Shown: positions 49,706 to 51,741 of the stretch, piece by piece | Layout: each line of letters starts with the position of its first letter | Numbering within the stretch: position 1 is the stretch's first letter | Sequence record: NC_042116.1 | DNA: 64,000 nucleotides | Direction: 5' to 3' (one strand) | The notes under the pieces: model-generated | The model's input: the letters and a program-made list of their open reading frames with translations, nothing else | Told to the model about the DNA's origin: nothing | The model's database searches: none | Position numbers and translations under genes: made by a program

Positions 49706-50184
49706 ATTTGTGTCATGTCTAAATCACCAGATTTGATCAGTTTTCTTGCTTGATTCGCTCTCTTGGCTGTGTTAGACTCTGGTACTACATTAAATGATTC
49801 TAAAATAGAACATTGTTGAGCAGAGGGCAATGATTTGAACTTTCTAACATCAACAGTTAATGCAGTATGGTGTATAACTTGTTCATCTTCTGGTATATTA
49901 TTATTTTTTTCTAAGTAATCAGCCAATTTTCTTAATACTTCATGAATAGGCTTGTCGGTTAAATGCCCCAAACAGCGTTTAAATGAGTTTACAACTCGAC
50001 CTTCCCACCCGTTAACTTCATTTTGTAATACTTCACGGCAATGCTGATTGTCGGCATGAAGATGGTCTAAAACAGGTTTTGTTATAGGAATACCAATAAT
50101 AGGATCTATACCTTTTTGTTTTTTTAACAATTCGTTGCGATATACTGCTGCTTCTTTTGAATTTTTTAATCTTTGTCGTTTCAT
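49690..50184 (-). CDS. Recombination endonuclease VII (gp49-like)
   Basis: QKGIDPI...VLDHLH...CREVL...NGWEG...LADYLE. Start MKRQR (50184) with GAGGT. Confidence 0.75.
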   Translation of the reverse strand: MKRQRLKNSKEAAVYRNELLKKQKGIDPIIGIPITKPVLDHLHADNQHCREVLQNEVNGWEGRVVNSFKRCLGHLTDKPIHEVLRKLADYLEKNNNIPEDEQVIHHTALTVDVRKFKSLPSAQQCSILESFNVVPESNTAKRANQARKLIKSGDLDMTQIKKGA

Positions 50185-50226
50185 ATATACCTCTAAAGTC
50201 TTTATATAATTGTATTTAACGAAATA

Positions 50227-50255
50227 TGGAACAGATAAAAATAATTTGGTATAAT
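50227..50255 (+). promoter_or_regulatory. Hybrid promoter D (TGGAAC-N17-TATAAT)
   Basis: TGGAAC 50227-50232, TGG-TATAAT 50247-50255; points into an ORF-free region. Confidence 0.8.
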
Positions 50256-50261
50256 AAGATA

Positions 50262-50761
50262 GTAAAACCCTGTTTGGCAATACATATATGTATTGACAGT
50301 TAATAATCCTGATCTAGTCGAAAAGTAGACAGCAGATGAGAAGTTCAAACAGTTCGTTGTGCAAAAGAAACCCGTTAGAAGTACGTGCAGTCAATCAAAT
50401 GAGACATAAGACACCGAGATCACGGCAATGCGGCACATTAAAGAAGTACACTAGGCAAATAGTACTTCCTCGATAGACATATAAGGATCGCACCTTACAA
50501 AGTAGCTAAGGGAGTTTTTCTGAATAAGAAAATTGCGATTGATTTATATACAATATAGATCCGTCAAAAATTCAGAAGAATAAGTATTAAGATTGATTGT
50601 ATAGTCTTAATATTAGTGTGGTAAGCCCACGACCGTTACTATATGAACAGTGATAGAGAGAAACAGAGTAACCCGCTTTCGTTCTAGTTATAGAAATTCA
50701 CTATACAATTAATCGATGACCATCATCGTCAGAAAATTAATACCTTAACTGGTATTTTTTT
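50262..50761 (+). ncRNA. Candidate ~500-nt structured non-coding RNA (family unknown)
   Basis: No ORF of 60 aa or more; bounded by promoter D and a hairpin plus T-run at 50739-50761; many stems with G-U pairs. Confidence 0.45.
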
Positions 50762-50934
50762 ACGCATTCATTCCCCTGCGGGGGGATGGTATAATCTCAA
50801 CAAATCTCGTCAGTATTATAGTATTGAACATAGAAAGAAATGAATTGAGTTGTTTCAGTACAAACGAAGTGAAGTACAGAACAACGAAAATTCTTTGACA
50901 TTCTTCGAATGTCAAATTCAATTAAGGATAAAAA

Positions 50935-51741
50935 ATGAATATTAATTTAATGAATGGTAATTGTATTGATCTAATGAAGAATATTCCTGATAATTCAATA
51001 AATTTAGTTCTTACAGATCCTCCTTATGGAACAACTGCCTGTTCATGGGATATTGTAATTCCATTTGAAGATATGTGGAATGAATTGAATAGAATAATAG
51101 CACCATGCGGTTCTATTTGCTTATTTGGTTCAGAACCATTTAGTTCTTTATTGCGAGTAAGTAATATGAATGCATTTAAATATGATTGGATATGGTCTAA
51201 AAATAAAGGAACTGGTCATTTAAATGCTAAAAAAATGCCTATGAAATATCATGAAATTGTTTCAGTATTCTCTAATACTCCAATAACATACTATCCTCAA
51301 ATGACTGAAGGGCATAATCCTATGAATTATGCAAAAAATAAGCAAAATAATATAAATTCAAGTCATGGAAGTGTTGTAAATAATGCAGGAAGTACCTTAC
51401 GAAATCCAAGATCTATACTTGAATATAAAACCGTCAATAATGATGGAAGTACCGATGGTGGTAGATTTCACCCATCACAGAAACCAGTATCATTATTGGA
51501 ATATTTTATAGAAACTTATACTAAAGAAAATGATACAGTATTAGATTTTACAATGGGTAGTGGTAGTACTGGAATTGCAAGTGTAAACTTGGGAAGAAAT
51601 TTTATTGGTATTGAAATGGACGAAAATTATTTTAAAATAGCAACTGACCGCATTAATAATGCAATAGATATTAAAAGTAGTAATACTGTGGATTGTGATG
51701 ACAAAAAATCAACTGATGAACCTGATTTTTTTGAATGGTAA
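50935..51741 (+). CDS. Beta-class DNA amino-methyltransferase (probably N6-adenine)
   Basis: Motif IV DPPY precedes motif I LDFTMGSGSTG; HPSQKPVSLLEYFI. Confidence 0.9.
   Translation: MNINLMNGNCIDLMKNIPDNSINLVLTDPPYGTTACSWDIVIPFEDMWNELNRIIAPCGSICLFGSEPFSSLLRVSNMNAFKYDWIWSKNKGTGHLNAKKMPMKYHEIVSVFSNTPITYYPQMTEGHNPMNYAKNKQNNINSSHGSVVNNAGSTLRNPRSILEYKTVNNDGSTDGGRFHPSQKPVSLLEYFIETYTKENDTVLDFTMGSGSTGIASVNLGRNFIGIEMDENYFKIATDRINNAIDIKSSNTVDCDDKKSTDEPDFFEW

Follow-up and report, generated by a model that had tools for sequence, protein, structure and literature searches.

A predicted gene for a large structured RNA, one of five paralogues in the Yersinia jumbo phage fHe-Yen9-04

The window analysed here, a stretch of 64,000 nucleotides, belongs to the genome of the Yersinia jumbo phage fHe-Yen9-04 (Eneladusvirus, 354,378 bp) and is identical in sequence to record positions 124001-188000. 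The genes for endonuclease VII (g240c) and for a Dam-like methyltransferase (g241) border a gap of 750 bp (50185-50934), which an initial annotation had singled out as the only long gap of a gene-dense window. It is indeed the sole long ORF-free stretch: if DNA without an ORF of 75 aa or more is counted as ORF-free, the gap contains 654 nt of it compared to 206 nt in the next internal gap. The GC content had been estimated at about 35% and thus above that of other intergenic DNA. We obtained 35.0% for positions 50262-50761, compared to 23-30% for the other gaps and 32.4% for the whole window.

The gap is found again in related phages. In the Erwinia pEa_SNUABM and Serratia BF phages it is 90% identical, compared to 84% for the surrounding 7 kb. 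The identity amounts to 80% in CBB and GAP32, to 74% in Kaldavass and XbC2 and to 68% over 50305-50818 in the 121Q/PBECO4 group (Asteriusvirus). All these relatives have kept the place of the module between the endonuclease VII gene and a baseplate-hub gene. It is there divergent from the former and convergent with a small ORF and the hub genes, i.e. it runs against both neighbours and is therefore not their leader. The methyltransferase gene g241 (50935-51741) is absent from this site in all relatives examined, in which a small ORF on the - strand and then the baseplate hub follow instead, and it is probably missing from the corresponding site of fHe-Yen9-03 too. It looks like a recent insertion directly 3' of the module.

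Scanning the whole record in pieces revealed five paralogues on the + strand, each located in an ORF-poor gap (A to E, Table 1). They share the promoter motif and long near-identical blocks with variable hairpins in between. Matches were found in 62 phage records at four to five places apiece (only four in Asterius-type phages), while no copy was detected at blastn sensitivity in phages outside these records. Pattern scans of IMG/VR followed by nhmmer, together with GenBank loci, provided 66 copies from about 15 jumbo-phage genomes or large contigs. At 97.5% identity 49 of them were non-redundant, and 48 of the 49 had the 3' block as well as a TATAAT box close to the start. A loose pattern, CGACCGTT...AACCCGC, was discarded, as chance matches predominated among the matches listed for viral contigs; tighter patterns worked. 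In a tree of the copies the orthologous groups A to E are common to Eneladus- and Mimas-type genomes, such that the paralogues must be old and individually maintained. The Asterius-type copies cluster together, yet at least two of them keep syntenic positions. This clustering points to concerted evolution or to separate duplications in that group.

Homologues also occur in bacteria. Among 185,579 species genomes four full-length homologues were detected (Serratia fonticola chromosome, Serratia sp. 2723, Silvania hatchlandensis and an Enterobacteriaceae MAG), all with the same promoter as the phage copies. A further full-length copy, also with this promoter and present in two of 5,426 complete E. 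coli genomes, occupies an unannotated 1.4-kb gap of a genomic island adjoining ffs. In Serratia fonticola the RNA is situated beside a large serine recombinase gene and two ParB/RepB-like genes at an element edge next to rof-tilS. The other context is a position between an integrase gene (of serine or tyrosine type) and a CI-like S24 repressor gene, with which the RNA is convergent. In the Enterobacteriaceae MAG a TPP riboswitch upstream of thiM (L187, 5385-5481) marks the chromosomal side of the prophage junction. A neighbouring protein common to all contexts was not found, and a blastn search of the PLSDB plasmids (72,556) yielded no copy. A metagenome scan provided 61 full-length copies, mostly on jumbo-phage fragments and including five bacterial ones already known. 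It also revealed a subtype, type 2, at nine loci (L213, L218, L224, L243, L246, L248, L258, L259 and L270), which has kept the 3' half (pseudoknot domain and GGGGGGAUGG block) but differs in its 5' half, which follows a promoter of its own, TGTTATAAT.

Table 1. Features of the RNA locus and positions of its paralogues. Positions are those of the window unless marked as record positions.
Feature	Position	Strand	Basis or remark
Paralogue B	record 24.5 kb	+	record scan
Paralogue C	record 93.3 kb	+	record scan
Paralogue A (gap of the window)	record 174.3 kb	+	record scan
Paralogue D	record 260.4 kb	+	record scan
Paralogue E	record 334.7 kb	+	record scan
Endonuclease VII gene g240c	start 50184	-	left border of gap
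Promoter	50227..50255	+	TGGAAC (-35-like, 50227-32), 17-nt spacer, extended -10 TGGTATAAT (50247-55)
5' domain of RNA	50262..50500	+	covariation counts; helices H1 to H10
H1, CUGUUUGG/UCAAACAG	50270-77/50345-52	+	all 8 pairs covary
H2, palindrome hairpin	50278-82/50291-95	+	covariation
H3	50309-19/50328-35	+	covariation
H4, pseudoknot, encloses 3' strand of H1	50340-42/50353-55	+	covariation
H5	50358-62/50433-37	+	covariation
H6	50372-75/50422-25	+	covariation
H7, pseudoknot, H5/H6 junction with GACAUAU	50428-30/50478-80	+	covariation
H8-9, GAAGTA/TACTTC	50443-48/50463-68	+	covariation
H10, TAAGG/CCTTA	50482-85/50494-97	+	covariation
Junction CUAAGGGAG with AAGGGA core	50506..50514	+	invariant columns in alignment A1
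Variable peripheral insertion	50515..50582	+	alignment
Insertion stem TTCTGAAT/ATTCAGAA	50518-25/50570-77	+	alignment
Conserved hairpin-loop module ACAATATAGATCCGTCAAAAATT	50550-72	+	alignment
3' pseudoknotted core domain	50583..50709	+	helices H11 to H17
H11, AGTATTAAGAT/GTCTTAATATT	50583-93/50604-14	+	covariation
H12, pseudoknot, H11 loop with strand 100 nt downstream	50596-602/50703-09	+	covariation
H13, GTGG/CCAC	50617-20/50628-31	+	covariation
H14, pseudoknot, CGACCGUUR with H16 loop	50635-39/50668-72	+	covariation
H15	50649-53/50698-702	+	covariation
H16	50656-60/50676-80	+	covariation
H17, TTCTA/TAGAA	50683-86/50691-94	+	covariation
Small hairpin CGATGA/TCATCG, ending in motif 1 CGTCAG (50727-32)	50714..50732	+	weak hairpin, limited support
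Terminator-like hairpin ATACC/GGTAT and T-run	50740..50761	+	sequence
C-run/G-run hairpin and invariant GGGGGGATG	50772..50788	+	carries GGGGGGAUG
CAAATCTCGTCAG / CAAAUCUCGUCAG, contains motif 2, a copy of motif 1	50801..50813	+	CGUCAG at 50808-13
Downstream block common to many D- and C-type copies	50821..50925	+	alignment; membership in RNA uncertain
Dam-like methyltransferase gene g241	start 50935	+	right border of gap

A promoter pointing into the gap had been part of the initial annotation, and its extended -10 element belongs to the whole family: a TATAAT-type -10 box lies within the first 200 nt in all 48 aligned non-redundant copies, in nearly all of them at the same aligned place. Bacterial copies retain TGAAAC and TGnTATACT/TATAAT, with TTGAAA-like -35 boxes. 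A generic sigma-70 and terminator scan missed this phage-type promoter, because its -35 element is not TTGACA-like, and also the weak A-type terminator. The A promoter agrees with the "divergent RpoD-like" class described for CBB and GAP32; in CBB most promoters of this class fall in a part of the genome where genes for DNA synthesis abound (PMC5259590). This tie to replication genes is the sole hint at the expression with middle genes that had been inferred before, such that middle expression is only suggested. The extended -10, a form that host sigma-70 holoenzyme should recognise, could equally allow early reading by the host enzyme.

From the position of the -10 box we infer an RNA start at ~50262. 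The hairpin and T-run that had been taken to close the unit are present and probably form the 3' end of most A-copy transcripts, though without transcript data. The conserved module of the A copy, however, extends beyond 50761 to about 50813. We thus infer an RNA of ~480 nt up to the internal terminator and of ~550 nt with read-through. At the corresponding place types A, C and D have a hairpin with T-run, while in types B and E only a U-rich tract is seen. A transcriptome study of these phage genera was not found in the literature. Since transcript data exist for no family member, ends, abundance and timing are merely inferred.

The secondary structure was derived from a MAFFT alignment of 48 copies (A1, 719 columns), of which 94 columns are invariant, many of them in junctions. 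RNAalifold predicted 65 pairs on A1, 45 with compensatory changes, and a de novo search for covarying columns recovered these helices together with several crossing ones. The resulting consensus model comprises 18 helices with 92 pairs, including four pseudoknot helices. Standard pairs occupy 95.5% of its 4,257 cells, compared to 75.8% after shuffling. Two-sided changes were found at 71 pairs and in 816 cells (53.5 and 224 when shuffled), values that none of 500 shuffles reached. The covariation score was 0.526, whereas sliding the 3' partners by 1-3 columns reduced it to 0.066-0.095 with merely 36-41% of cells paired. Compensatory substitutions thus exceed the controls, as expected of a structured RNA gene. 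In a mixed alignment of phage, bacterial and type 2 copies H13 to H17 and the C-run/G-run hairpin held equally well (94.9% paired; score 0.515 against 0.08-0.19 for controls).

The pairing is also strand-specific. We counted 273 G-U cells but only 31 A-C cells; the + strand is therefore the folded RNA strand, as had been argued from the G-U pairs of single stems. Folding of 50262-50761 alone, a check proposed earlier, gave a modest signal: z was -2.64 for the + strand, which 0 of 100 shuffles equalled, and -1.95 for the - strand. A conserved ORF was not found: the longest ORF per copy measures 31-85 aa and varies in strand and place. This bears out the view that the unit is ORF-free and meets, together with the promoter, the generic test for an RNA gene (own promoter and terminator, no conserved ORF), with the reservation that the terminator-like hairpin exists only in types A, C and D. 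Tiny ORFs have been annotated over RNA copies in public records, such as g047/g048, g159/g160 and g347/g348 at record 24.6, 93.6 and 260.7 kb (L010 24587-25068, L011 44570-44872 and L014 24693-24845). They are probably spurious calls.

Six of the stems proposed earlier reappear as covarying consensus helices (H2, H8-9, H10, H11, H13 and H17). The extension of the palindrome by CTGT/ACAG was wrong: CUGUUUGG instead forms H1 with UCAAACAG. The 5' domain is followed by a junction whose AAGGGA core is retained in the type 2 subfamily too, and by a variable insertion. For the long-range stem TTCTGAAT/ATTCAGAA within the latter compensatory changes are visible by eye in A-type orthologues; a formal count was not made, and the stem belongs to a variable part of the molecule. 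The site of a conserved hairpin-loop module (ACAAUAUAGAUCCGUC.AAAAUU) depends on the type: A, B and E have it in the central insertion (A1 columns of about 385-410), C and D within the H17 loop (about 545-575). Swapping of peripheral tertiary-contact elements in such fashion is known from large ribozymes. In the 3' core domain H12 covaries within each copy, and covariation cannot distinguish intramolecular from intermolecular pairing.

In the tail of the module GGGGGATG is invariant in 48 of 48 copies, and within the fHe-Yen9-04 genome GGGGGATG, CAAAYCNCGTCA and ACCCGTTAG are confined to the five copies. The C-run/G-run helix shows C/U changes on one side only. A partner for the G-run at the 5' end or in other C-runs was considered and not adopted, as the positions are invariant or vary one-sidedly and hence carry no covariation information. 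A small peptide from GGGGGGAUG was likewise rejected, its reading frame differing between copies. Motifs 1 and 2 agree with each other across 93 distinct 3' domains: CGUCAG occurs together with CGUCAG 52 times, CGUCAA with CGUCAA 18 times and CGACAA with CGACAA once, and all nine type 2 copies have CGAAG at both places. Once kinship is allowed for, only some four of the double changes are independent. Type 2 has UUCG instead of GACG on the strand 5' of motif 1, such that the small hairpin is kept (UUCG/CGAA). Since the 5' strand compensates the change of the motif, motif 1 is paired locally. The hairpin itself, CGATGA/TCATCG in the earlier list of stems, remains weak, and GACGA/UCGUC was not accepted as a general helix: it has weak support within type 1 and is supported by the between-subtype change only. 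Motif 2 could compete for the partner strand of motif 1, or one factor could read both motifs, which we leave undecided. As the terminator-like hairpin of types A, C and D stands between the two motifs and before the invariant 3' block, part of this block may act as DNA or in read-through only.

Further downstream a perfect palindrome, TTTGACATTC-TTC-GAATGTCAAA, lies at 50894-50916; it was scored as a terminator-like site of the - strand, and its membership in the RNA is uncertain. In the equivalent block 3' of other copies the hairpin is kept by compensation (CAUUC-GAA-GAAUG compared to CUAAC-GGA-GUUAG).

The RNA could not be assigned to a known family, which agrees with the failure of the initial annotation to match one. 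A search of the whole window against Rfam 15, including GOLLD, ROOL, OLE, HEARO, group I/II introns, RNase P, tmRNA, 6S and RNAI, gave nothing at the gathering threshold. At E<=10 only two chance matches appeared in 50100-51000, and these lay off the element or on the - strand. The bacterial copies and type 2 loci had no Rfam 15 match either. ARAGORN found no tRNA or tmRNA genes in the window. In an informal comparison, which as a test adds nothing to the Rfam result, the helix order showed no fit to hammerhead, group I/II intron, RNase P or HDV-like architectures. In the literature on jumbo-phage ncRNAs, fHe-Yen9-04 and related genera we found no description of this RNA, and the words "intergenic" and "non-coding" are absent from the CBB genome paper (PMC5259590). 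For PA5oct, a distant relative, four ncRNAs have been defined by RNA-seq (PMC7318152), and an automated catalogue lists more than 10,000 phage RNA motifs (PMC10690425). The family may sit unnamed in this catalogue, with which no sequence comparison was made. Apparently it is undescribed so far, and we place it among the large structured RNAs without known function that phages and mobile elements carry.

On the evidence of the sequences alone we regard it as settled that 50227 to ~50813 on the + strand constitutes a stand-alone gene whose product is a large structured RNA. Strong covariation, G-U asymmetry, the lack of a conserved ORF and the lack of an Rfam match all agree with the new large structured ncRNA that the initial annotation had suspected. 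The data establish homology, multi-copy spread, the + strand as the RNA strand, a fold with 18 or more helices, the absence of coding potential and a conserved promoter motif. Judged by sequence matches, the carriers are jumbo phages of the Eneladus, Mimas and Asterius types, while prophages and genomic islands of Enterobacterales have one copy each.

Taken as a whole, we consider it likely that the locus is paralogue A of a self-contained large structured ncRNA gene that acts in trans in mobile elements. Host RNA polymerase, possibly modified by the phage, would transcribe it from the extended -10 promoter. The RNA would fold into a compact core held by many invariant junction nucleotides. 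In trans it may function as a ribozyme or provide the scaffold for an RNA-protein particle that relies on host factors. The mobile element would benefit from it, probably in its conflicts with the host or with competing elements. The 3' tail with the motif 1 hairpin, the U-tract or terminator, the GGGGGGAUG hairpin and motif 2 may constitute a module for 3'-end formation, processing or switching. No neighbouring gene points to the function of the RNA. Its "moron"-like carriage by unrelated mobile elements within a single bacterial order, without a dedicated protein, and junctions conserved like helices fit a trans-acting RNA that works alone, as ribozyme or self-assembling particle, or with conserved machinery of the host. 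The most economical guess is that it takes part in conflicts of mobile elements with their hosts.

Few bacterial or phage RNAs longer than about 400 nt combine dense covariation with many invariant junction nucleotides. Where the function of such an RNA is known, it is mostly that of a ribozyme or of the core of an essential RNA-protein machine. Only tentatively, and as less likely than not, do we entertain a new class of large functional RNA, be it a ribozyme, a self-assembling particle or a pre-primer of a new origin type, with paralogues that differ in specificity and the 3' CGUCAG pair as a processing or switch device.

The main rival of a trans-acting RNA holds that each copy is an RNA-primed replication origin, its transcript being a structured pre-primer as in ColE1 RNA II or the R-loops of T4 oriF/oriG. 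A persistent hybrid at the G-run/CGTCAG block would be processed to prime DNA, with five origins per 354-kb genome and one per excised island or prophage. All five copies point the same way and lie at roughly even distances round the genome, for which a simple circular random-placement model gives a chance of ~0.02 that the smallest gap is this large. This spacing counts effectively as a single observation, because synteny is common to the phages. GC skew follows gene orientation only and is hence uninformative on an origin. The promoter class located in CBB mostly near DNA-synthesis genes (PMC5259590) would fit an origin, as would the two ParB/RepB-like genes and the serine recombinase beside the Serratia fonticola copy. 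The same applies to the invariant G6 run and to the 3' block, which looks like a DNA-level element past a terminator. From start to motif 2 the module measures about 550 nt, similar to the length of RNA II, and GATGCTCGTCAGGGGGG is present in ColE1-type origins. The words shared with these origins were verified but may be chance. Homology to ColE1-type origins was found neither by nhmmer at E<=100 nor by blastn against 72,556 plasmids, and no PLSDB plasmid bears a copy. Furthermore, 94 invariant positions and four pseudoknot helices far exceed the known needs of a primer, and the prophage copies lie between int and cI, outside the replication module. We thus hold the origin to be unlikely without discarding it.

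Considerably less probable is a cis-acting leader or attenuator for downstream genes. Genes on the + strand do follow within 100-160 nt after the B, C, D and E copies, and the two identical motifs around the terminator could pair alternatively. Yet the downstream genes vary from copy to copy, such that the riboswitch test of a constant downstream class is not met, and the A copy in all relatives as well as the prophage copies, which face the repressor gene, are convergent with the genes ahead. Nor is a precedent known for a pseudoknotted leader of 500 nt that has a promoter and terminator of its own. Very little speaks for a repeat at the DNA level, be it a recombination site, a protein-binding array or a decayed mobile element, with an apparent structure that is merely incidental. 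Such a repeat would account for the multiple copies, their occurrence in several kinds of mobile element and the concerted evolution of the CGTCAG direct repeats, but neither for compensatory changes in 71 of 92 pairs, long-range and pseudoknot helices included, nor for the one-stranded excess of G-U over A-C, and the copies are old and syntenic without recent transposition. Small proteins or a decayed gene, for which one might quote the annotated tiny ORFs or a 46-aa ORF at 50336-50476, can practically be dismissed, as position, strand and frame of the ORFs are all unconserved and the frame of the conserved 3' block differs among copies.

Outside the window, at record 100.1-103.4 kb (L012, 2148-5380), the gene of an "RNA-binding protein" (g176, 508 aa) adjoins an RNA ligase gene (g174), and a polynucleotide kinase and further RNA ligases are annotated elsewhere in the genome. 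The g174/g176 region may be an RNA repair module; a link to the RNA family is not known.

The family is tractable, since it is carried by cultured phages of E. coli, Salmonella, Cronobacter, Erwinia, Serratia and Yersinia as well as by an E. coli island. Four to five old, diverged paralogues per genome represent a rare natural experiment on specificity, and the covariation of the alignment already suffices to guide mutagenesis and cryo-EM. The analysis furthermore corrects genome annotation in several public records, where tiny, probably spurious ORFs had been placed over RNA loci. The orphan RNAs GOLLD, ROOL and OLE each started a research line.

Among known systems GOLLD and ROOL resemble the trans-acting RNA proposed here in their size of several hundred nt, their many covarying helices and their pseudoknots. 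They are likewise stand-alone genes of phages or prophages without an associated protein gene or known function. Both form RNA-only multimers according to cryo-EM (bioRxiv 10.1101/2024.12.08.627333). The pairing of the H12 loop with the 3' strand, which is specific to each paralogue, could in principle be intermolecular as well, although multimer data do not exist for our family. Unlike GOLLD and ROOL, the family has hosts among Enterobacterales rather than Firmicutes and relatives, matches their Rfam models neither in sequence nor in structure, does not adjoin tRNA genes in the fHe-Yen9-04 window and forms four to five diverged paralogues per genome.

ColE1 RNA II is also a promoter-driven structured RNA of ~550 nt from mobile DNA of Enterobacterales, and the G6 run and the CTCGTCAG word near the 3' end recall it. 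There is, however, no homology, the shared words are ordered differently, and the phage RNA does not reside on plasmids, is far more conserved and is pseudoknotted. For an antisense RNA I no Rfam RNAI match was obtained on either strand of 50100-51000. With T4 oriF/oriG the locus shares a promoter aimed into a non-coding stretch and several dispersed copies in a phage with T4-like replication and recombination genes. Neither homology among the T4 origins nor a conserved RNA fold in them is known, whereas in the fHe-Yen9-04 family the fold is the conserved feature. The prohead RNA of phi29 (about 170 nt, single-copy) is not homologous, and the four copies in Asterius-type phages and the single ones in prophages and islands set the family apart from it. 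It is nevertheless a phage-encoded structured RNA whose function needs loop-loop pairing that covaries, and five paralogues would, by analogy only, echo its pentamer.
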